The notes below the pieces were generated by a model that saw only the letters and a program-made list of their open reading frames with translations, ran no database searches and was not told where the DNA came from. This document shows, piece after piece, positions 377 through 18,200 of a stretch of 64,000 nt of DNA. Location: the NCBI GenBank assembly GCA_976226885.1, contig OZ320316.1, forward strand, positions 75,020,001 to 75,084,000, read 5' to 3'. Position numbers and translations under genes: made by a program. This DNA comes from Iphione sp. A-MEVVRFRX5 (lineage: Eukaryota). How positions within the stretch are numbered: position 1 is the first letter of the stretch; every line of letters begins with the position of its first letter.

Positions 377-397
377 CAGGGGATGGTTTCAGAATGC
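377..397 (+). repeat. Left TSD (CAG) and left terminal inverted repeat
   Basis: CAG at 377-379 followed by GGGATGGTTTCAGAATGC. The core pairs with the right end. Confidence 0.8.
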
Positions 398-618
398 GCA
401 AAAATAATGGGATTAGCACCTTTAACCCCGGAAATTGAGTTAACCCCGAAATGGATGTTTCAGAATGTTCAAATGTAGTTTGTATTAAAATTTAACCCCC
501 TACTCATGACTTGATACCAGTGCGTTGTTTCAGCATGACGTTTAACCCCTGAAAATATAATCTTACTATTTGAGTAGGATTAGTTTGTTTTGAAACTGTC
601 TGGCACGAATGACCTCGA

Positions 619-2806
619 ATGAAAATGGCTGCTGTTCGTTACCGTGCAAGACGAATAATGCGTCGCTTTGTTTATTATGACTGGTACCCACGACGTTTGA
701 CGGATCCGCATAATCCACTTGAAATTTTGAGTGAAGATGAAGTGAGAGAACGGTATCGTTTTTATCCTGACACGTTATATATACTTGCAAGGATCGTTTG
801 TCAGCCCTTGACACAGGACCGTCGGAGAGGGAGTCCATTTCCCCCTCTCATTCAAGTTCTCATCTTTGTACGCTATCTCGCCACAGGTAAGACCTTTAGT
901 TAATGTCCTGTAAAATGTATTCCCATGTGTAAAATGTATTCCCATGTGTAGACTACAACCGCTACAAGTATGAATTTTTTTTAATTTTTTTTTTTAAAGG
1001 TGTTCGTGTTCATTCATGCCCCCAAATTTGTTGAAAGGCTGTGTTCGTGCACATTCGTGTATAAAGAAAAAATTGACGGGCTCTGTTCGTGCTCATTCGT
1101 GTCTAAAGAAAAAATTGACGGGCTGTGTTCGTGGTCATTCATGTGTTGTCTAGTGAAATGGGGATGTATATGTCTGTGTGAGTGTAAGTGGTAACTGAGT
1201 TCGTTGGTGTGCCTTGCCCTATGGTAACAGCTATAGAGTCCATGAAAATTGTGTAAGAGTTTCATGGCCGAAGTTAGGATTCCATGTATATTATGTCCTT
1301 TTCCTTTTCTAGGTACTGAGCAGCTGACAATAGCTGACATATTTCGTGTTAGCAAGGCATCTGTATGCAGGACTGTGCACAAAGTGGCATATGTGGTGTA
1401 CAGTTTGATGTTCGAGGAGAGTATTTGCCTGCCAACAGCTGAAGAACGGCCGCGTATCATGGCAGGATTTCAGGCCATCGCTGGTATGCCACACATCATT
1501 GGGGCTGTGGATGGTACCCACGTGAGGATCATGCGTCCTCGCATGATCCCGGCACAGTTCGTGAACCGGCATCACCAGTATTCAATCAATGTACAGGTAT
1601 GAACTGTTACTAAATGCATAAATCAAGAACCCTTAATTACAGTAGGGTACATGAGTTATTGTACCATTAAAATTGAGTGGAAAAGGAAATACTCGTCGTT
1701 ACTCAAGTGTATGCTGACAAAGACAAAACAATGTGAAGACAATGTAGGGTGTAGTTAGAAATATTTTTATTGCCATCATCATGTCCAAACAGCAAGTCTT
1801 CAATAGAAAAACATCAATTTGGGCAGTAAAAACTGTAACTTTTTCCTTAAAAGTCTGTCCAGCTAGGACAAATCTACTTGCAAATCACTAGAATAGGCAC
1901 TGTGGCCTTGTACCCTAGAATACACTTGTTACTTTCCCTTTCATATGACTGTAGATGGTGTGCGACCATGAACAACGTGTGCGAAATATTGTAGCGGGAT
2001 GGCCTGGCTCCACACATGATTCTCGCATCTACAAAAACAGTGTTGTCTGCACGCGTTACCTACCTAACTGTTAGTACCCGACTAAATGTTATGTTATTAA
2101 AGTTCTACCATAATTTACTAGTACGATACAGTCTATGATTTCACCTCCAAAATTACCCAAATTCGAAGTACAGAATAAATTATCTGGGTGCCAAAATGAG
2201 TACATCTATATGTATTACAGGTAGTAAAATGTCTATCTGCTGTGCATTATGCTTCGACACATCTTAAAAATACTGTAGAGAGACTGGAATGTTCTTGCTC
2301 GGCTGATATCGAACATGGCTCATTATACATGTTGTTGATAATAATGTGAACAGTTGAAAACATTCTTGAACCGATGCAGTATATACAAACTGTTGTGTTC
2401 CATTGCAGTGCAAGGTCCTGGCCACATTCTAGGTGATTCAGGGTATGCCTGCACAGGACGGACACTGACCCCCTACCGAAATGCTGTAGGTGCTGCTCAG
2501 AATGCCTACCAAAATGCGCATACGACCACACGCACCATAATTGAGCACACCTTTGGTGTAATCAAAAGTCGGTTTGGTGCACTGGGAAAGCGGCTGCGAA
2601 CCTCGCCCGAGAGGAGTTCGTGCATCATCTCCTGTGCAGCAATACTTCACAACTTTGCACTGGACCATCGTGACGAGTTGATTGAGACAGTGCCACCCTA
2701 TGTCCCCCCTCCCGAGGAGCTTGAAGAGGCGGCACTGGAGGTCATTGAACAACCTGGGTCACAATATCGTGATCTGTATGCCCAGACCTACTTTGGCCGG
2801 CGCTGA
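619..2806 (+). CDS. PIF/Harbinger DDE transposase (HARBI1-like, DDE_Tnp_4 type), 4 exons, 354 aa, intact
   Basis: Exons 619-886, 1313-1596, 1955-2069 and 2409-2806, all GT-AG, join to 1065 nt in frame. Family motifs: RERYRF, QVLIFVRYLATG, IADIFRVSKASVCR (HTH), GAVDGTHV (D1), NRHHQYSINVQ, WPGSTHDSRI, LGDSGY (D2), TPYR, RTIIEHTFGVIKSRF (E), CAAILHNF. Confidence 0.93.
909..950 (+). repeat. 19-bp tandem duplication in transposase intron 1
   Basis: TGTAAAATGTATTCCCATG at 909-927 and 928-946, plus a partial TGTA. Confidence 0.85.
1003..1143 (+). repeat. ~42-bp tandem repeat (3-4 units) in transposase intron 1, each unit carrying a TTCGTG-N4-TTC(G/A)TG dyad
   Basis: Dyads start at 1003, 1044, 1086 and 1128. 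The spacer TAAAGAAAAAATTGACGGGCT recurs. Confidence 0.85.
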
Positions 2807-3083
2807 AGTGCACATGTTTGTTTGTTCAGGTACTCCGGGCCGAAGATCGACAAGTGTCCCTCCTGCGAGTGGGGTTGGGTGTTGGCCTCTACTGTGTTAA
2901 TGGGATATAGTTGAATTCTTGATTGGTAGAAGCTATAGAAAAGCATACTGGGTTGGTAAGGAGTTTAAAAAAAGCTAGAAGCTCATTTTAACTTCCTGAC
3001 CAACCCAGTGTTCTTGTCCATAGTTACTATCAGTCCTGAATTGAACTGCATCCCTTTAGCATGAGAGGCCAACACCCAACCTT

Positions 3084-6000
3084 CTATGGAAAACCCCACT
3101 CGAGTTGGGACACCCGTTGATGTTCTGCCTTGGAGTACCTGAAAGAAAAATGATAGAGGCACTAGCCTGCCTAGTACAGTTCCTGAGTGAGGCACTTGAA
3201 ATTATCGGTGCATGTACAACGAAAAGGGGCTTTGTGTGTACTTAGAAAATTCCTTGTAAATGTGGAAGGGTTCCTCTGGGTTGCTTGGTTGTCCATCCAT
3301 CGCTCTTGCCTGCGCTGCTGTACACTCAAGTTCGACTGTGCGTGCTGAGAGGTCCAACATGGCTTTTTGTTTATCCGCCAGGTCCATCTGTAAAGGGAAA
3401 ATGTTAAAAATATCAGCTACCCACTTTACATGCATGTTTGGATATACAAGGCAGTTCGTGGATGTTCGTGACATGGACCTATGTCAGAGGGGCACATGCA
3501 TAATTGACCGAATGCATATAGGCCCATCACTTGCTTCTGATTACCTCTCTGTTTAACCTAATCAAGCAGACATGAACCATTATTAACATGTGTCTGGACA
3601 GCATGTATGAGTAGACATCATGTTTAAGTAATTACTGATCTTGACACATACATTCTTGGATTGTCTACCCAGTATGCCTGCTCGCTGTCATGCTTGTATC
3701 TGTATATGTGTGGTTATGTATGTATGTACCTGTTTCTGCACCAACTGGCGTTGTTCCTTCCATAGTTCCTTTTCCTCTTTTACCGCAGCAAGTTTCTCAT
3801 TCAGGATCTTCACCTTCACCTTCCTCATTTCGGCCTCATCCTTCAAACACTTGTGTTGGGCTTTTGCATTGCCAACCTCCAACTTGAGCAGGGCATCCCT
3901 ATTCTTGTAAATACTCTGAGTGGGGGCTAAATCATAAGAAACAAAGCAAACAGATATTGAGATAAGGACATGAAAATAGTGCCATGACATTGGCGCTTTC
4001 CTAAATGCAGTTTGCTTCATGGTTCCTGGCCCAAACTAAATTGTTATTCTTACCTATGGCATGGATATGCAGGACCCTGTACTGAGCCTGACACTACAGT
4101 TTACAATTAGAGACTCAGCATGTACCCTTCCATTGCTGTTGGAGGTTTGACGATAACCTAGAAGTACTGCTTTATTACTGGTTGCTGTGCCCTGCTGGTT
4201 CCACCACTATATTAAATGTAATGTCTATTTACCCTTTCTGCCACGCCTACCACGTTGAGTGCTGGTGGCCTGTGTCACAAGTACCTCGGGATCTTCATCA
4301 TCTGACTCGGATTCATCCAGGTTGGCTACTGTAAAATAAAAAATAAACAAAGCTCTGTCAGTCAGCCACGGAAATTATATATCTGTCTCTTAGGTGACCC
4401 CCCCCCCTAGTATGGCTGTCACTTGACATTTCCGACATTGGCAAAATACAGAAGATGCTTTGCAATCAGGCTAGTTTTACACTAAGCTACCTTAAGAGCA
4501 GGTGAGGACCAAATACCTATCAAGAAATACTTTCATAAATGTCTCAGAGTACATGTATTCACTTGGAGTCAATCCTGTCCAAAAGCTAAGATACATTCCC
4601 ACTGGGCTGTACTTACCGAGTTCCTGTGTGCTAGGCAGATCAACAGGAGGGGTGGGTGGCAGTGAGTCAGATGACTCCACATCTTCTTCGGGTCTTGTGA
4701 TGGTTGCTGTTGGGGCACGTCTCTTCAGTTGGGTGTTTTTCTGGGATGCTGTGGTCCTCTGCTGTCGAGGCTTCTCTGCACGGCATGCTGACTCCTTCAA
4801 GTATGGTGGTCTGGGCACATCTGGAAAGAAGTTCCAATCAATGTTCATTTACAACATCTTCAGTATGGACTACATTAGTGTACAAGCATAAGCAGTGAAC
4901 CCCGTTACATACCAGTGCATTTTTCTAAGGTCACCAACCTTTCTTGGGGCTACTTTGTAGTAACAGAATGACATGAGCATAGTCAATGAGAAATAAATAC
5001 TAAAACAAATTAAAACATATACACATAAATATTGTTTCCCTCTACAAAGCACATAGTATCATTGTGCATGGTACAGATTTACTACTCACCACCAAAGCTG
5101 GAGCCGGCGCCAGGAAATCCCTCGCTGCACCCTGGTCTCATGTCCCTCATCAGCTGCACCTCAGCTTTCACTTTGGTTGTAACAGGACCCGCTCCTGTTT
5201 GAAGCTCTTGGTTTGTTACATCCCGCACTGGAGTAGACAGTACAATGTGGCGTTTGTGTAGAGTCACGCCGATCTTTGGGTTTTAGCCAACATGTCAAAG
5301 AATTGTGCCAAATCTTTGGCCCAAATAACAGTCTCGGTGTGGTCAAAGTGTCATTCATAGGGAAATATACCACAGTTACATTCAATTGCAGACCATAGAA
5401 CAGCATCATGTAGTTTATGTGAATGGTGGCCCCTGGGAAATCTCAAAATACAGTCTCTGATTACATGTCTTCGGGATTTGATGGGTATCAAACAGTGTGG
5501 GAAAGTAGTAGGTGGCCTGAGGACTAACAAGGTAGTACAGGTGCAGTGTCAGTTTGGTGTACTGAAATAACATCACGCATGAATCCCAGCCTGACTCCCA
5601 TTGGTAGCAAGCTAATCCTTTTCCACCGATTTCCAACTTTGTCTAGACACAAAAAGAACACTCTGGGCCCAGTCATATAGAACTCCTCCTCAATAGGTAC
5701 TGGGCGGCCCCTAGCTTGTTCGAGACGGTATCGAGCCACACTGTAGAGATGTCCCTGGCTAAGGTTGCAGGTATTAGCCTTCACTTGTGCGGCGTGCCAA
5801 CTTGAGAGCATTACCATGGGTCCAAGACGTAAGACAAAGGAATTATAGCAATCCTCCCATTCATGTAAGATATCATCAACAAATCCTTTGACTACAGGCC
5901 TAGCTAGCACAGTGACCCTGAAGTCCTCAAACTGTAGTTCGGGCACATCCCTTCCTGAAGTACGTGGAAGTAGATAGGTTGCACTTGTTCCATCATCTTC

Positions 6001-9000
6001 AAGAGATGCCTCCAGCATGTATGGGGAACAGCCACCCATAGAAGATGCCTCATCGTCTGCATCCATGTACGTGAAGCTGCGTGGACTACCATCAGGGAAG
6101 ATAGGACTGGCTAACCCAAAGTCAACTCGAATCGTGATATGGCCATCAACACTACCGGGAACATCTCCATGGTTGTGCCCTCGTCGTCGTTTCTTTGGGG
6201 GAGGTGAAAGTTCATGTATTGGTATCAGATCCCTGTATGCACGCTGCATTGCATCATTTGCCAGTACGTACATATTGTACATTGGCGACCCCAAAACACT
6301 ATCTGCGTTATCAGTACTTGTCTGGTGGTCTTCTACTCCCCCAACCTCTGTGCCACAGTCCTCCTTGGGCTGTGTGTCATCTGAAGGATGGTGTTCCTCC
6401 TCAGGTACTTCCATGTCATCACAGACATTAACCCGATTGAAATCATTTCCTAAGGCAGAGACTTCAACGTCATCTATTAATATTGTGTTGTCTGTTCCAC
6501 TCTCCTCTCTCTGTTGATCTATGTCCTCCTGGTGCACACTGTCACTACCACCATGCAAAATGTGTGCATCACTGACATACTGGCCAGGGGTCCCAGAGCC
6601 AACAGGCCCAGGAAGACATGAACTGCCATCGCCTGCTTGCAAGTCAATGCTGTCTTGCCTTCCATCACCATCCGCGAGCAGTGGACAGCCACTAACATCA
6701 CCATCAACAACAATCGATCCATGCTCCTCTATCACCATGTCATCAACAATGTCAGTGCTGACAACGGGCCCACAATTATCATGTCGAGGAAGGGTACTTC
6801 TGTCTGACTCGTGTATGTCCATCTTCTCAACACTAGTATTAGGAAGGGCAGCATCTTCTTCGGACATATCAGGCAGATGGCTGCGGTTACTGGGCATACA
6901 AGGCACACCACCACAGGAACTGAGAGTCTCGGTCTTCGGCTGCTGTTTACTTCTTGCAACATCCATTGATGACCCACTGGTCTGCACAGACGTAGTCGCA
7001 CCCTGTCTTGCGTGACATGAGGAAGTACACAGGCCACTCCGTGTGTAAATCACTATAGGCCGCACCTTTTGACAGACTAGACAGCGACATTTACATGTGC
7101 ACCGGGCTGCACGCTCAAGCCGCTGACGTCGCCGACACTCTCTCATGCGGGCTGCTTCCTTACAGTTGTAGTCAGGTTCATTTAATTTGCGCTGAACGCG
7201 GTAATTCCGCATGTATTCAGCTTTTTTCGCCCTGCGCAACTGCTCCGGGTCCTCTCTCAAAGCTGAAGGGACCACAAATTCAAAGGTGCATATCAATAGT
7301 AATTAATACAGGCCACGAACGTACACGAACATGTTTACGCTTGGATCGAACAGAGCGATAATAGGGGAAGTTGTCGAGTACAAGTAAACAGCGGTATGGA
7401 ATTACATAAAACTACGTACACAAAGAGAAATATATATATTTCCTAACATTATGGTGTCTTCTTAGACATACTAACCAGCCTCAGCCATCTGCGAAGAACA
7501 GTGACAACTCTTCAGTCCACGCTGAACGCAGCTTTCGGCCCTAAGGCGCTGGCCGAGAGCTTATACCCGTAACGGGCAAGGTGGTACATAATACACATGC
7601 GCATTATTGGTAAAAATTACAAACAAAATTTTGGGACCTGTCAAGGACACACATTAAAAAAATGAGGCACACATTTCCTAGTTCTTCATACTTATGTCAT
7701 TCTTCTTTTTGGCAATATTTTCGACATGGACAGCAGAGTGCCTACCGTGGCTGATGATGTCATGTCCTACACACAACTCTGACTACGAACAGACCCGAGG
7801 GGATATACGAAATGCACAAGCATTCCTTACCGGGATTGCCTCACACAGTTACATATTAGTATGAGCATACTAAAACTAAATACATCCAAAAAATTGTGCA
7901 AGTACACTTGGGGAATACCGACAGGTATTTTACAATCAAGCAGCATGGCATGTCACCATAAGCAAGGCAAAATATTAACAGGCTATGCATCTGTTAACAT
8001 AACTTTAATATAACTACTCGGTGGGGCACCAACAAAAAAAAGCTATGAGGGCCACACAGCAATGCATAGTAATGTCATCCAAGGTCTAGGATGTAGGACA
8101 CGTCCTCGCTTTTTCCCAACAACCGCACAGACAAAACATATTAGCAAGCACTTCTCAACCATAAATACAGTTATCAGTTTCAAACTGAAACAAAAATGTT
8201 TTACAACCTACAGGCTATAATGTACTTTCCACAAAATAATTCTCAAATACAACCAAGGTCAAACATCCTCAGGACAGATGCAAACAACTGTAACTCTCAA
8301 ATTACATAGCCACGTATTGCCAACAGAACCTAATACTTTTTTAAACGTAACATAACCAATCGCAATTTTTGTCTCGGCTGAAAAAACAAGTACTTAGTGT
8401 TATCTAACTACACCAACAAAAACACAAGTCCCTCCTCACTGCAGTCACTTTCCAAAGCTCGCTTTACACAGACCCGCTGGGCATACTATCATCACCATTG
8501 CCAGACTCGTCAGCCAACAACCCTGTACTATCAGCTTCACCAGTCCCTCCAATCTCAGGAGACCGTTCAGTCACGTTCGTGCTGTCTGCTGCCTCTCTCA
8601 CTACCTCGGAGACCATCTGGGAAACATCATGCACGTCAGCAGGTGTCCCTGTTCCTCGGTCTGCTCCAGCACTCGAACCTAACAATGTATGAACCGAGGT
8701 TGTTTTTTTTCAGGATAAAGAAATGTTTGGATAAGGGGTTAGTCTTGTCTACAAGGACACTTCATTATGACCTCTGTAGCACTACTAAAGTCCAGTTAGC
8801 AAATTCTTGCTATTTTCACCAAGTCAATATTTTTATTTCTGTAAGTGGGATACATGGGTGCATGCAGGACCCATATGAGGCACAAGGACATTTTCTAAAA
8901 TTCACCATCTTCTAACAAGGAAGGAACACCATTACCTAGGTGTGATACTCACTACTTGGGGTGACACTGCTCTGCCAGAAGGCATACCACCTTGCACGGT

Positions 9001-10387
9001 TAGCTGCATTATGCTCTGCTATTATCTGCCGAGCTATGGCCTGATGGTCATTCGTAGTGTGGCCACATGTCAGCCTGACGTTCAGGGGAGTCATCGGCAC
9101 TCCATGGAAGAGGTCCACCTCTTCCAAACTGTATGAAGATATGTCTCCCATCCCCCGCCGCTCTCTCCAGGCAATCTCACCGATGATAGAGGGCCTTTCG
9201 GGCACCAATTCCCGCATCCTCTCAGCCTCAGCAGTGGCGGCTGGTCAAAAATAAAGGGCTGGGCTATTGGGTCTGTATGTTTTCAGGGAAACCAAAGCGC
9301 CTTCACACATTTTCACTCCTAATGACAATATTACAACTTTCTGGTGGAACACATATACAGACACAGTAAACACATCTCAACCTAAATATTGGGCCAATTT
9401 CACTGGAAGTGCCCCTAACAGGAGGCTGACAGCTCCTAACATGAGGCAGACACAACAGACCAAGGATAAGCCACACTTCACTCAAGTGTATCCTGAAAAT
9501 GGAAGCCTTATTTCATTTCATTAGTCATCACTTACATTTTTGCTTTATGTTCTTGATCTTCTGCCTAAATGCCTTCTCTTTACGTGGTTCGTCTGCCTCC
9601 CTATGTCATAAACAATTGAAAATTAACAAATCATGTATATTTCAGGTAATTACATGGGCCAACCATTGCTAAGTGATTACACTTATTTTCATTATGTTAA
9701 TTTTGCTAGACAATTTCCGACACAGATACAAACACTTCTTGGGTGGCTGAACTCCCTCTCCACCTATGACTTTACAATAAATGGGTTCTTAATATAATAT
9801 TGACCTTTACATTATTATGGTATTCTCAATATAAACATTATCTACACAGCAGGATTTGGGATATGTTCAAACAGGGTAGTAACACTCCCTCTCACCAATA
9901 CGAATGGGTACGAACAACAAACCACCTTTTAACATGCACACACGAATAAACACGAAGTCAATCATATGGACACGAATGAGCACGAATGCATTTCTCCCAT
10001 GCACACACGAATGAACGCAAAAAATTACCACTGCCACGTGTATACAAGGTGCTTTCCACAGTAGGCCCCACAAGTGATAACAGTGTCTACGGGCATAGTT
10101 CATTCAAGGGGTACAATGTGGGCAAAGTCATACACAATCACAAATTATTTTCATAGACATACTTACTCATTAAATTTGGCCAAGCAGCGCTGCCACAGAG
10201 CTTTTCGTTTGGCCTTTCCGCCAGGCTTGTCAAGTGGTGTCGCATCGTCGAGCTCGTTCTCATTGAAGATCCTAACAGCCAAAAGGGCATCATGTTCGGA
10301 CCAGTTCGAATCCCTCTGGCGCTTAGTGCCTTTCTGAGTGGGAGGCACAACATCTTCAGACACGAATGCAGCAGCGGAATCATCCAT
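3084..10387 (-). CDS. Harbinger Myb/SANT-like (trihelix) DNA-binding partner protein, ~373 aa, 8 predicted exons
   Basis: Exons 10387-10167, 9600-9536, 5227-5090, 4820-4617, 4328-4233, 3926-3730, 3387-3242 and 3138-3084 join in frame (1122 nt) with GT-AG sites. The N-terminus KRQRDSNWSEHDALLAVRIF...KALWQRCLAKFNE...AFRQKIKNIKQKLRDVTNQELQTGAGP matches the Myb/SANT-like domain ending in a TGGGP-type motif. An acidic S/D/E-rich middle and a C-terminal coiled coil follow. The last exon is the least certain (alternative stop at 3202). Confidence 0.82.
5524..7488 (-). CDS. ORF3: uncharacterised ~583-aa putative nuclear protein nested in intron 2 of the Myb-like gene
   Basis: Uninterrupted 590-codon ORF (5524-7296) with a polypyrimidine acceptor GTCCCTTCAG| at 7263/7262 (phase 1). 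A candidate 13-nt first coding exon ATGGCTGAGGCTG|GTTAGT at 7488-7476 gives MAEAALREDPEQLRR... in frame (1752 nt). It contains an NLS-like PPPKKRRR at 6204-6181. Function unknown; the 5' exon is tentative. Confidence 0.72.
8487..8678 (-). CDS. Additional phase-1/phase-1 low-complexity coding exon (192 nt) inside Myb-like intron 2
   Basis: Acceptor CATTGTTAG| at 8679/8678 and donor |GTATGC at 8486. Encodes S/G/D/E/T-rich SSAGADRGTGTPADVHDVSQMVSEVVREAADST...GNGDD in the same frame phase. Confidence 0.45.
8953..9240 (-). CDS. Additional phase-1/phase-1 coding exon (288 nt) inside Myb-like intron 2
   Basis: Acceptor TTTATTTTTGACCAG| at 9241/9240 and donor |GTGAGT at 8952. Open in the frame of Myb exon 2: (S)ATAEAERMRELVPERPSIIGEIAWRERRGMGDISSYSLEEVDLFHG...RARWYAFWQSSVTPS. 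Confidence 0.55.
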
Positions 10388-10414
10388 TTTCCAAAAAATC
10401 GACGGGAGCCCAAA

Positions 10415-10489
10415 CACGAATGATCACGAACAGGCAGCAGAATAAAAAGGCGCGGCAATGACGTCAGCCACGAACCAGCACGAACCAAT
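10415..10489 (-). promoter_or_regulatory. Probable promoter/5' region of the Myb-like gene (CRE palindrome, CCAAT, two CACGAA dyads)
   Basis: Lies 28-102 bp upstream of the ATG at 10387. TGACGTCA at 10459-10466, CCAAT at 10485-10489, CACGAA-N4-CACGAA at 10415-10430 and 10469-10484. Confidence 0.5.
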
Positions 10490-10610
10490 GAAATGTTCGG
10501 ACACATCCGTTCCCTAGCAACGGCTAATATCGGTTTTAAGGAATGCACTTAGCATTTTAATACGGGTATTTATTTAATCATGGTACGCTAAGTCCGATAT
10601 TAACTTTTAG

Positions 10611-10631
10611 GCATTCTGAAACCGCCTTCAG
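10611..10631 (-). repeat. Right terminal inverted repeat and right TSD (CAG)
   Basis: GCATTCTGAAACCGCCTT (reverse complement AAGGCGGTTTCAGAATGC) followed by CAG at 10629-10631. Confidence 0.8.
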
Positions 10632-15088: not shown

Positions 15089-15272
15089 NNNNNNNNNNNN
15101 NNNNNNNNNNNNNNNNNNNNNNNNNNNNNNNNNNNNNNNNNNNNNNNNNNNNNNNNNNNNNNNNNNNNNNNNNNNNNNNNNNNNNNNNNNNNNNNNNNNN
15201 NNNNNNNNNNNNNNNNNNNNNNNNNNNNNNNNNNNNNNNNNNNNNNNNNNNNNNNNNNNNNNNNNNNNNNNN
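15089..15272. other. Assembly gap (184 N)
   Basis: Run of N characters. Confidence 1.
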
Positions 15273-18200
15273 GGTAAACGAAGAGGTTGCTCGTGCCTGT
15301 GATTTCCCGTTGTCTGCCTGTGGCAGGCACAAAGTGGGATGATGACAAATACAGCGGATCACGGCCGCCGGCTGTCTATTCACTGCACGCCGCGGCCGAA
15401 TAGCGGCGCTAAGATGTTTCATTAGGCTACTCTTCGGGCCGGAGTGAGGGACGGGTGGATAAAGCTCAATCGATTCAATCAAAATAAAACAGGGCGCGTG
15501 ATAAGACGGCTGATCCCATCACACGGGTTTGGGCCGAATGGGCGCGACATGGGACCGACGGAGATCTGAGGAATTCGACGGCCGCCACGGCCGCCTACCG
15601 CTGTCAAGGCAAGCACGCGGCCCACATGGACGCGTAAGCCAAGGCTCAGACAGAGCAGTTGGCGAGTTGGGAAGAGAACAGCTCTGACTGACTGGGGCAC
15701 CGCCCCTGGCATTTTCGACTTTGCGCGTCTTTCTGCTGACGCACGTGTGTCTATGTGTGTTGGGGGGAGGGAGAATTCAAGGCTGTGTACTTGCCGTGTA
15801 AGGAGCAGAATGCCGTTAGCACATGTAAGCTGCCTGGCAAATACGCACTGGGCTGGGACAACACATGAGGATAGTAAATCTCCGATCGGGGTGATTCTCA
15901 GAGGCGACCGGGAGGGATGGAGACCTTGTAGTTCGGACCAGACCAAGTCAGCTCATTCAATGAGCCCTACAGCGCAGGGCACTTTGAAGTATTTGCAAAG
16001 GGGCTCAATGCTCATCAAACGGTTAGGGTTGACCTGGGTCTGATTTACTATGAACATGTCTAAACTATGTACAGCGGGCAAATTCTTTTACGTGTGTCAT
16101 CTCCAGAGCGGCTACGTGGAGGAGGGGACGTCCGTCCAGTCAGACGGTGACGATCAAATCAATATTTCAGAGAAACCGTCAGGCCGCCCTGCAAGTGGAA
16201 AAAATGAGGACAAAATGCAGGAAGAAACCTAGGCTACTGCCTGGCAACAATTACCCCTTTCGGATGTCGTCAACGACATTCCGTTGTCAGGTCCTCGACT
16301 AAAAACGCTCCATACTCTTTGGTCCGTGCGTCGTCATGAATGCAAACTGCATTATAGCGCGGCATAGTAGATTGGTGTCACGTCGGCGAGCCGATGTGGA
16401 AACAGTTTTACCCCTACTTCACGAAAGGGAAGTCAATTATGTACTGCGTCCAATCACTGCCTATGCAGAAGTGGCTATTAAATCTAGAAACGATGGCGTC
16501 TCCACCTATTTTCTGTCCTTCTATTGAGACGCAATACGAGTGTGCTCCGTCGGGGACTAGGCACCTGTCGGCAAACGGTACTTTGCCGTTTGATGAATAT
16601 CAATCAAGAATACAGACCCTGAAACACGCCGAGTAATTTGCGTTGCCTCGGCCAAACATGCCGTAGGTGTACGCGCGAGCCACAGCCAACTCGCACTCTT
16701 TATTAACCTCTCAATACAGGTTGGCATTACGAATGCAGTGCTCCTTCATCATAGGACGCTAGCGCTTCATGAATTTAGACAATCGTACTCGCGAAAGCAA
16801 TTAGTGACTTGGTTCTCCTTGAAAACGTGATCGAGGACAACTATCTCTTCTTTATGGCATCAGCACTGAGCAAACACATCCCTCCATAATGCTAAACCCC
16901 CTACGAATCCTGCGTTTACTTAGGACTTTCGGCACGCATGAAGTCATATTCATGACTTGCTGGAAGGTTTTTGCTGCGTGCTTCTTTAAAGGTGAGAGCT
17001 CTCAAGTGCACTCCTTACAACCAATTCTTGCTCATCAATTTCTCTGTTTTAGTTTCTTTTCTGTGACAGACTGCAGCTGTGGTAAAAAAGTCCATGTTTG
17101 CTTGGCCTGCATAAATTTCAATAGTATTTCTTGTGCAAGTCCTGGAGTCATGTTTACACAGATATCCCGGACGGTCTGAAGGCCATATGAATTTTTATAT
17201 TTTCATTCTCAGGCAAGCTTTTTTTCAGATCTCTTTACAAATATCCCAAGAATATATCTGACATCCACTTTCGTTTCGAAAATGTTGATAAGGGGGGGGG
17301 GTGAAAACTATCAGCCATTTGACCCATGCTAGTGATCATACAAAAAGTGTTGACAGAGTCTTTTGATGTATCGCATTTCCCACATATCCATTTTTAATGC
17401 AAAAACAACAATTCACCATCACAAGGTATGAACGGAGTCTATATAATATTGCGGCTATTTCTTACCTGTTTTTAACAAGGTAATAATCTCGATGGTGCTC
17501 CCAGCAAATTCCTTTGCTGCTCATACTGTTCTGCCGAATATTTATCTCTCCTAAGCCATTCTGATGCCATCGTCCCTTCCATGCCTTCGGGAACTTGCAG
17601 CGCGACTCTGAAATATTTAAAGAAAGACATCTATGACTGCGACAGTCGCATAGATACGAAAAGTAACATCTGCTGTATAATATATCGAGACATCAAAGTA
17701 ACGATTCCCCTGCATGGCATTTCCTATACACATGTCTACATCTTGGGGATTACAGGAGCTCATACATTATTCATAATCTAGTTACCCATTACGACCCCAT
17801 AAAGTGTTTAGTGGTCATGGGAGATATTCATCAGGCATACTAAGGAGTCGCTCGGATTGTTCAGCATGTAGCTCGTAAAACAATCACGTTGGTATGTTTG
17901 CTCACGCTAAGAGTAGAGGCGGGTCTCCCCCTTCCGCTCACCGCAAGAACCGGTTGTAGAGGTCACACCACCGCGAGTTGCTCTAGCGAGGTGTGTAAGG
18001 ACACCGTGGTGACACCGATGTGGCCCCAATGGGTACCAAGGAGCTGCTCTGTCATTGTCCAGCCAACCGAACCCCCAAACACGCTAGGGTCAAGTGGCCG
18101 CGGCACCACCAATCGATATAAGGCCAGTGCGCTACGTACACCACACTGCCGCTGGCTACCCCAATATCCTACCGACTGCACCACCCTCCCACAGCTGACC

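Follow-up and report, generated by a model that had tools for sequence, protein, structure and literature searches.

Gene content of PIF/Harbinger transposons

Among DNA transposons, Harbinger elements are the textbook case of a two-protein system. For Harbinger3_DR, a transposase and a Myb-like protein reportedly suffice, and the short motifs repeated near its ends are said to be likely binding sites of the Myb-like partner. The few known exceptions carry, to our knowledge, recognisable chromatin enzymes (SET, TET/JBP). The element considered here lies in a stretch of 64,000 nucleotides from Iphione sp. A-MEVVRFRX5 (assembly GCA_976226885.1, contig OZ320316.1, positions 75,020,001 to 75,084,000), referred to below as the window and numbered from its first letter. 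Like Harbinger3_DR, this element encodes a transposase and a putative Myb-like partner and has short motifs repeated near its ends; unlike Harbinger3_DR, it also encodes a third conserved protein. A 1.74-kb exon within it probably supplies most of the coding sequence of a true third gene in a recently active NuwaI element, and a regulatory role is the most likely of the functions considered for its product.

NuwaI elements belong to the PIF/Harbinger-ISL2EU-Spy (PHIS) superfamily, are described with two open reading frames (ORFs), average about 4.5 kb in length and occur mainly in animals; they are defined by a CWG target-site duplication and by terminal inverted repeats that start with GGG (Han et al., 2015, PMC4482050). 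The element in the window shares with them the 3-bp CWG duplication, the GGG repeats, a transposase of the DDE_Tnp_4 type, a second gene with a putative Myb/SANT-like head and an animal host. It differs in being 10.25 kb long and in holding a conserved third gene and extra phase-1 exons.

Two other kinds of Harbinger element offer a comparison in gene number. In the account of Kojima and Jurka (2014) given in PMC12730594, oomycete HarbingerS elements carry an additional gene for a SET histone methyltransferase. Both HarbingerS and the present element thus carry an extra gene, that of HarbingerS being thought to act on chromatin, whereas here neither a SET domain nor any other Pfam domain was found in the third protein. 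The fungal PHISTA elements that carry TET/JBP encode three proteins, one of unknown nature, have TA duplications and lack a Myb/SANT protein (PMC12730594). The number of proteins is alike, but in the present element the duplication is CWG, a probable Myb-like partner is encoded, and the third protein has no Pfam match to a dioxygenase.

The third gene and its coding exons

A frame of 590 amino acids on the minus strand (5524–7296) is by far the longest in the list of ORFs for the first 16 kb of the window; about 5e-13 runs of 590 stop-free codons would be expected. The window's element belongs to what is called family A, and two sets of relatives, A' and B, are used for comparison. The gene model comprises the following features.

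7561–7584, minus strand: candidate core promoter, inferred by reading the sequence, with a CCACC..TGCCCGTT motif common to family B followed by a TATAA-like box
7476–7488, minus strand: exon 1, coding part of 13 nt with the ATG, encoding Met-Ala-Glu-Ala plus one base; conserved in A, A' and B
7263–7475, minus strand: intron 1, 213 nt; the family-B intron is of similar size and the same phase
5524–7262, minus strand: exon 2, 1,739 nt including the TAG stop at 5524–5526, lying inside the 590-codon open frame 5527–7296

Directly 3' of the 13-nt mini-exon stands a GTTAGT donor in phase 1, and the acceptor consists of a polypyrimidine tract and an AG at 7264–7263, also in phase 1. Joining 7476 to 7262 therefore keeps the frame and yields a product of 583 residues. 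The TATAA-like box lies about 75 nt upstream of the ATG. The mini-exon is identical across 28/28 family-A loci and is kept in A' (L031) and in B (L029, L032); together with its GT donor it forms an island of identity in surrounding DNA that is barely alignable among the three families. The AG that precedes the ATG is present in family A and absent from A' and B. Because this AG is not conserved, and because insertion of 13 nt would break the phase-1 frame, the mini-exon is best read as a first coding exon and not as a cassette, which argues that the gene probably has its own start. As judged from these sequence features, the third gene is a real gene with two coding exons, a product of 583 amino acids and its own start, and it appears to have a promoter of its own. 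The acceptor, the ATG mini-exon at 7488–7476 and the length of 583 residues, all put forward in an earlier sequence-only reading of the window, were confirmed by reading the strand.

Linkage of the third gene to one Harbinger clade

In the genome of 1.18 Gb, the ORF is present at full length in at least 24 copies (94–100% identity), and 22 of the 24 are free of stops. Twenty loci were cut out for comparison (L001–L020, the window's own copy included); eight of them match the window over all 1,773 nt, and the remaining loci differ by 1–3 nt. Copies this similar indicate that the family moved very recently.

The third gene follows the transposase closely. All 24 family-A transposase matches (96–99% identity) lie about 3.2–4.7 kb from a copy of the ORF, and all four family-B transposase matches (62–65%) lie 3–5 kb from a third-gene homologue. 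Among the matches listed, none of more than 100 transposases at 55% identity or less adjoins an ORF match. Searches with the third gene gave 48 and 70 genomic matches, none of them found outside this Harbinger clade, and every context examined was a Harbinger element; 33 loci were read with their flanks, a set from which the families at C4:54.47 Mb, C10:60.09 Mb and C10:61.69 Mb were left out. The expectation that genome matches would always lie beside a Harbinger transposase thus held in this genome, where, on these matches, the third gene is confined to one Harbinger clade.

Harbinger and other DNA transposons do pick up host sequence, and this habit speaks for regarding the third gene as a passenger of no use to the transposon, whether host sequence captured whole or in part or a foreign element inserted within it. 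Among the 48 and 70 matches, however, no copy stands outside the clade. The frame, the start exon and the domains have been kept between families too diverged for their non-coding DNA to be aligned, and the third gene itself is bordered by neither inverted nor direct repeats. A mere passenger is accordingly considered very improbable.

Three loci deserve mention for their structure. One (L023, G000:C26:29700175-29710174) is a natural internal-deletion form that lacks the equivalent of window 1061–4033, with the transposase and the coiled-coil exon described below, and that retains intact ends, the 5' exons of the partner gene and the third gene. At G000:C15:50181046-50199697, two full copies lie in the same orientation about 10.4 kb apart, head to tail or nearly so. 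A more distant relative, compact in appearance (G000:C4:54474208-54478214), has partner exon 1 (55%), then a match of about 100 amino acids to the C-terminal domain of the third protein, 7 nt before the conserved 45-codon exon (68%) described below, and then the coiled-coil exon (47%). This relative may be a shorter ancestral form or a deleted copy.

Conservation between deeply diverged families

The readable relatives are L031 and L033 for A', and L029 (intact), L030 and L032 (both with stops) for B. Family A' has about 83% DNA identity to family A and is decayed, with stops. The non-coding DNA of family B does not align with that of family A. The order of partner exon 1, partner exon 3 and third gene is common to L029, L031 and L032, and in L030 the transposase on the opposite strand and the coiled-coil exon are found in the same place as in family A.

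Family B retains an open third-gene frame of 558 codons with about 30% protein identity to that of family A. Identity is distributed unevenly: in the head (residues 17–100), 51/83 residues are identical (61%), the C-terminal domain is at about 35%, and little is conserved in the acidic middle. Synonymous sites are saturated between the two families, the proportion of synonymous differences (pS) being 0.77–0.92; in the head, the proportion of nonsynonymous differences (pN) is 0.26 against a pS of 0.92.

These comparisons bear on the simplest alternative, a chance open frame in non-coding intron DNA. The lack of any database match and the low confidence of the structure models, both described in the following section, would suit such a frame. 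Against it stand the 590 stop-free codons, the independent frame of 558 codons in family B and a block-wise conservation of the protein at saturated synonymous sites, which together leave chance a negligible probability. As far as the sequences tell, the third gene is kept in position, frame, start exon and splice phase across two deeply diverged Harbinger families. It probably is real and belongs to the element, selection having kept it in one Harbinger clade, and this is the part of the proposed three-component Harbinger that was borne out: a genuine third gene of the element, conserved across families and placed beside the transposase.

Layout of the third protein

Five regions can be distinguished in the predicted product, with residues numbered along the ORF.

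7105–7248, minus strand: basic head, residues 17–64, two helices, isoelectric point (pI) 10.3, predicted local distance difference test (pLDDT) around 70–78
7012–7101, minus strand: Cys7-His cluster, residues 66–95, C-x-C-x-C-x-C-x2-C ... C-x3-C-H, its eight candidate ligands invariant between A and B
6211–7005, minus strand: acidic low-complexity middle by composition, residues 98–362, 53 D/E, pI 4.1
6178–6204, minus strand: basic cluster PPPKKRRRG, residues 365–373, candidate nuclear localisation signal, aligned with RPKRKR of family B
5572–6087, minus strand: conserved C-terminal domain, residues 404–575, about 35% identical to family B

The basic head is the only part that AlphaFold modelled with moderate confidence. 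The Cys7-His cluster is a possible zinc-binding module. The acidic middle is poorly conserved and rich in indels, remains open in both families and received no confident structure prediction. The C-terminal domain contains the invariant blocks DDEASS, EWED and WKRISL-PMGV, and mixed helices and strands are predicted for it. The SV40-like localisation signal noticed earlier is present and persists as a basic cluster in family B; judging from this motif, the protein is probably nuclear.

Database searches used the continuous 590-codon frame, which includes 578/583 residues of the product, or single exons. In Pfam, the 590-aa ORF matched 0 families at E<=1, the head and tail parts gave none at E<=5, and the family-B protein also had none. 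A profile search of PDB gave nothing at E<=10. Word-indexed protein searches with the whole protein, with residues 400–590 and with the family alignment A1 found no relative; a search of the ESM Atlas by features, with the whole protein and the C-terminal part, gave no usable match; and a metagenome scan with the A+B alignment found no relative. With shallow alignments, AlphaFold2 reached a mean pLDDT of 29.6 for the whole protein and 32.6 for the C-terminal domain. The view that the protein lacks recognisable SET, zinc-finger-array and reverse transcriptase motifs agrees with these searches, in which none was found. Nor was there a match to a described Harbinger third ORF, the SET and TET/JBP types both being unlike this one, as the proposal of a novel component would have it.

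Two candidate identities were rejected. The single match that an exhaustive phmmer search gave among 1.84 billion representatives, P0001, is taken as chance because it is a repeat protein in which one 57-aa stretch is matched five times, at 26% identity. The KEAARMR...RRR stretch recalls a basic leucine zipper (bZIP), but residues 1–99 have no Pfam match at E<=5, and the basic helices are followed by the Cys cluster instead of a zipper.

The partner gene and the exons downstream

The third gene lies on the strand of the partner gene, between the 5' exons of that gene and a set of conserved phase-1 exons.

10167–10387, minus strand: exon 1 of the putative Myb/SANT-like partner gene, ATG at 10387, with hundreds of distant homologues in the genome
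9536–9600, minus strand: partner exon 2, with a phase-1 donor and splice sites that recur in family B; probable third helix of the Myb-like domain
8953–9240, minus strand: partner exon 3, bounded by phase-1 sites on either side and 36% identical to its family-B counterpart
8464–8678, minus strand: possible partner exon 4, TAA stop at 8464–8466, conserved in A' only
5090–5227, minus strand: phase-1 cassette exon of 45 codons, 297 nt downstream of the third-gene stop, 36/45 residues identical between A and B
4617–4820, minus strand: downstream exon, phase 1 at both ends, exon start conserved in family B
4233–4328, minus strand: downstream exon, acidic then basic, fused with the next exon in family B
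3688–3926, minus strand: coiled-coil exon, the last of the downstream set, with a stop in frame at 3688 and a possible donor at 3730/3729; 42–47% identity to family B

Several relatives of partner exon 1 lie a few kb from other Harbinger transposases. Pfam gave no match on single partner exons; by eye, the W...W...basic-helix pattern of exon 1 fits a Myb/SANT-like head, which exons 1 and 2 seem to make up together. A TGACGTCA palindrome resembling a cAMP response element (CRE-like) occurs at 10459–10466 and at L029 4778–4785, 60–80 nt upstream of the partner ATG in both A and B; chance alone would give about one such site in a window, and only the conserved position is noteworthy.

No other coding part of the element is as well conserved as the exon at 5090–5227 (L030 8177–8311), with 80% identity between A and B as against 59–65% for the transposase exon. 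Every locus at which this exon or the coiled-coil exon was detected has the third gene as well. The junction between the exon at 4233–4328 and the coiled-coil exon is confirmed by family B, in which the two form one uninterrupted exon. A splice donor at the stop of the ORF, from which the frame would continue into the exon at 5227, was considered and discarded: in family A, T|GTTAGT spans the stop, but family B has no GT there.

In this arrangement the third gene may be nested in an intron of the Myb-like gene, as the sequence-only reading had it. The exon does lie inside the element; the host intron of 4.3 kb then assumed would be too large, for the conserved exon 5090–5227 cuts the putative intron to about 3.7 kb. 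The number and size of the introns are the sole uncertain part of that observation.

The same layout admits two other gene structures. In the first, the long exon would be mainly an alternative 3'-terminal exon of the partner gene, reached through the acceptor at 7262 and giving an isoform with a Myb-type head. All internal exons on the strand are in phase 1, so junctions from partner exon 2 or 3 would be in frame; the units lie on the same strand, and the only canonical poly(A) sites between them are at 8837 and 8009. This structure fits poorly with the 13-nt ATG exon, which in three families stands 213 nt ahead of the acceptor and has a conserved donor, whose length would shift the frame of a cassette, and whose preceding AG is not conserved; the promoter-like motif common to family B lies upstream as well. 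A fusion isoform as the main product is improbable on this evidence, and it could coexist with a separate third gene.

In the second structure, the promoter and ATG exon of the third gene would lead either to the 583-aa protein or to the downstream exons 5227–3688, and the Myb-like gene would be self-contained, ending at 8464; the intron around the long exon would then belong to the transcription unit of the third gene and not to the Myb-like gene. The donor of the mini-exon has the phase of the acceptor at 5227 (phase 1), and the exon 5090–5227 and the coiled-coil exon are seen only at third-gene loci; for partner exon 1, by contrast, hundreds of relatives exist among other Harbinger families. 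Partner exon 4, moreover, ends in a stop and has an ATTAAA downstream at 8009. Two points tell the other way: no conservation of exon 4 could be detected in family B, and in distant families an exon that is short or encodes a coiled coil may simply go unnoticed. A shared start with two products is therefore thought rather unlikely, if less so than a fusion to the Myb head.

Extent and class of the host element

The ends of the element were set by alignment of the window with eight other copies from the same genome.

380–10628: complete PIF/Harbinger element of the NuwaI type, family A, 10,249 bp, delimited by homology edges against 8 other copies
377–379: left target-site duplication, CAG, repeated at 10629–10631
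10629–10631: right target-site duplication, CAG, paired with 377–379
380–403, plus strand: left terminal inverted repeat with GGG start, 19/24 positions complementary to 10605–10628
10605–10628, minus strand: right terminal inverted repeat, 24 nt, imperfect, complementary to 380–403
625–2806, plus strand: transposase gene of several exons, ATG at 625, stop at 2806, with DDE_Tnp_4 and HTH_Tnp_4 matches

The 1.74-kb exon had already been placed within the terminal inverted repeats, and the ends at 380 and 10628, now fixed by the other copies, enclose it. The target-site duplications are CTG or CAG at seven other ends and CAG in family B, consistent with CWG. The inverted repeats begin with GGGA or GGGG on the left and with AAGG on the right in family A, and with GGGCC in family B. 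In the transposase, the last exon (2354–2806) matches DDE_Tnp_4 (PF13359) in Pfam at E=1.8e-16, and a weak match to HTH_Tnp_4 covers 1249–1602. Features of the PIF/Harbinger (PHIS) superfamily are thus present, namely a DDE_Tnp_4/IS5-like transposase, terminal inverted repeats and a 3-bp duplication. Owing to the CWG duplication and the GGG-starting inverted repeats, the element is classed, from its sequence, as a CWG-target member of NuwaI type in this superfamily. The two-ORF content of NuwaI is not matched, given the third conserved gene; the departure from NuwaI is one of gene content, not of transposase type.

Some features of the window are recorded for completeness. A nearly perfect long palindrome (2818–3150) occupies the space between the convergent genes just past the transposase stop; its arms of 82 nt (2895–2976 and 2980–3061) are flanked by an exact 18-nt pair (2873–2890 and 3064–3081) and by a further pair at 2818–2836 and 3132–3150. 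At 3224/3225, between the transposase and partner genes at their 3' ends, the window's copy has a deletion private to it, of about 207 bp that every other copy examined carries. A run of N, a gap or masked stretch, lies at about 15100–15300.

Dyads shared by the three genes

With two mismatches or fewer allowed, the window contains six copies of a short dyad, GTTCGTG-N3-(G/A)TTCGTG, every one inside the element; 0.02 occurrences would be expected. The dyads and related single units, all found by motif match, are distributed as follows.

7313–7330, minus strand: exact copy, GTTCGTG-N3-GTTCGTGG, inside intron 1 of the third gene
1043–1102, plus strand: two dyads in the first intron of the transposase gene
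3454–3471, plus strand: one dyad between the 3' ends of the convergent genes
10414–10485, minus strand: two dyads just upstream of the partner-gene ATG
9941–10021, minus strand: single dyad units in the first intron of the partner gene

At each of the three genes, the dyads have the orientation of that gene. The copy at 7313–7330 bears out an earlier remark that the first intron of the third gene has a dyad of its own.

Possible roles of the third protein

Several observations weigh against a third gene with a regulatory role and have to be set against the evidence above. The protein searches yielded no fold, domain or homologue that supports any function. Look-ups of the exact product returned no called gene on record with it, and from the third-gene stop to the next conserved exon there is no canonical AATAAA or ATTAAA. 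Relatives among eukaryotes were sought in this one genome only. Neither the dyad nor any shared 7-mer was found in the regulatory regions of family B, and the shared regulatory site therefore holds for family A only. The young copies differ at 15 nucleotides in all, of which 10 change an amino acid, too few to test selection. The ratio of nonsynonymous to synonymous substitution rates (dN/dS), which the sequence-only reading had named as a check, is also near or above 1 in two pairs, at 1.41 for A against L028 and 0.86 for the family-B pair. This check came out mixed: the values against L027 and A' are 0.41 and 0.56–0.69. Such a spread is expected where much of the divergence reflects the neutral decay of dead copies.

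The layout of the protein and the shared dyads point to a nuclear factor that would act, through DNA or chromatin, on the expression or silencing of the element. The protein would enter the nucleus by means of its conserved basic cluster; the basic helical head and the Cys7-His cluster would bind DNA or chromatin, and the long acidic region and the conserved C-terminal domain would act on the element itself. Its most likely role would be that of an element-specific transcriptional or anti-silencing regulator, for which the GTTCGTG dyads in the 5' regions or first introns of the three family-A genes are candidate targets. On its sequence features, this assignment to transcription or anti-silencing is tentative. 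A cofactor of the complex of transposase and Myb-like protein is a less likely role, and its assignment to transposition is the more doubtful of the two.

A working analogy is provided by VANC, the anti-silencing proteins of plant VANDAL (MuDR-type) elements, as described by Hosaka et al. (2017) in the citation given in PMC12730594. The two systems are alike in having an element-specific, fast-evolving extra protein and short motifs repeated in the same element. They differ in superfamily and in host kingdom, and no sequence similarity is expected. By extension, this clade of animal NuwaI elements might have evolved a nuclear regulator whose basic, zinc-binding head would recognise the dyads and whose acidic region would activate the element or shield it from silencing, as an animal counterpart of VANC. 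A further possibility would be that one internal promoter serves two alternative products, the long exon on the one hand and the downstream exon set on the other. This extended picture is speculative and, as it stands, unlikely to hold in full.

Significance for animal DNA transposons

An animal element that is currently or was very recently active keeps a fast-evolving orphan third protein across families that split long ago, and its retention over that time argues that the protein serves the transposon. Since the copies are nearly identical, the third gene is easy to clone and test. For annotators, 10-kb "Harbinger" copies in marine invertebrates may hide real genes that no database recognises. 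If the third protein is a self-directed regulator or anti-silencing factor, the element would be a rare case of an animal DNA transposon that encodes its own defence against host control.

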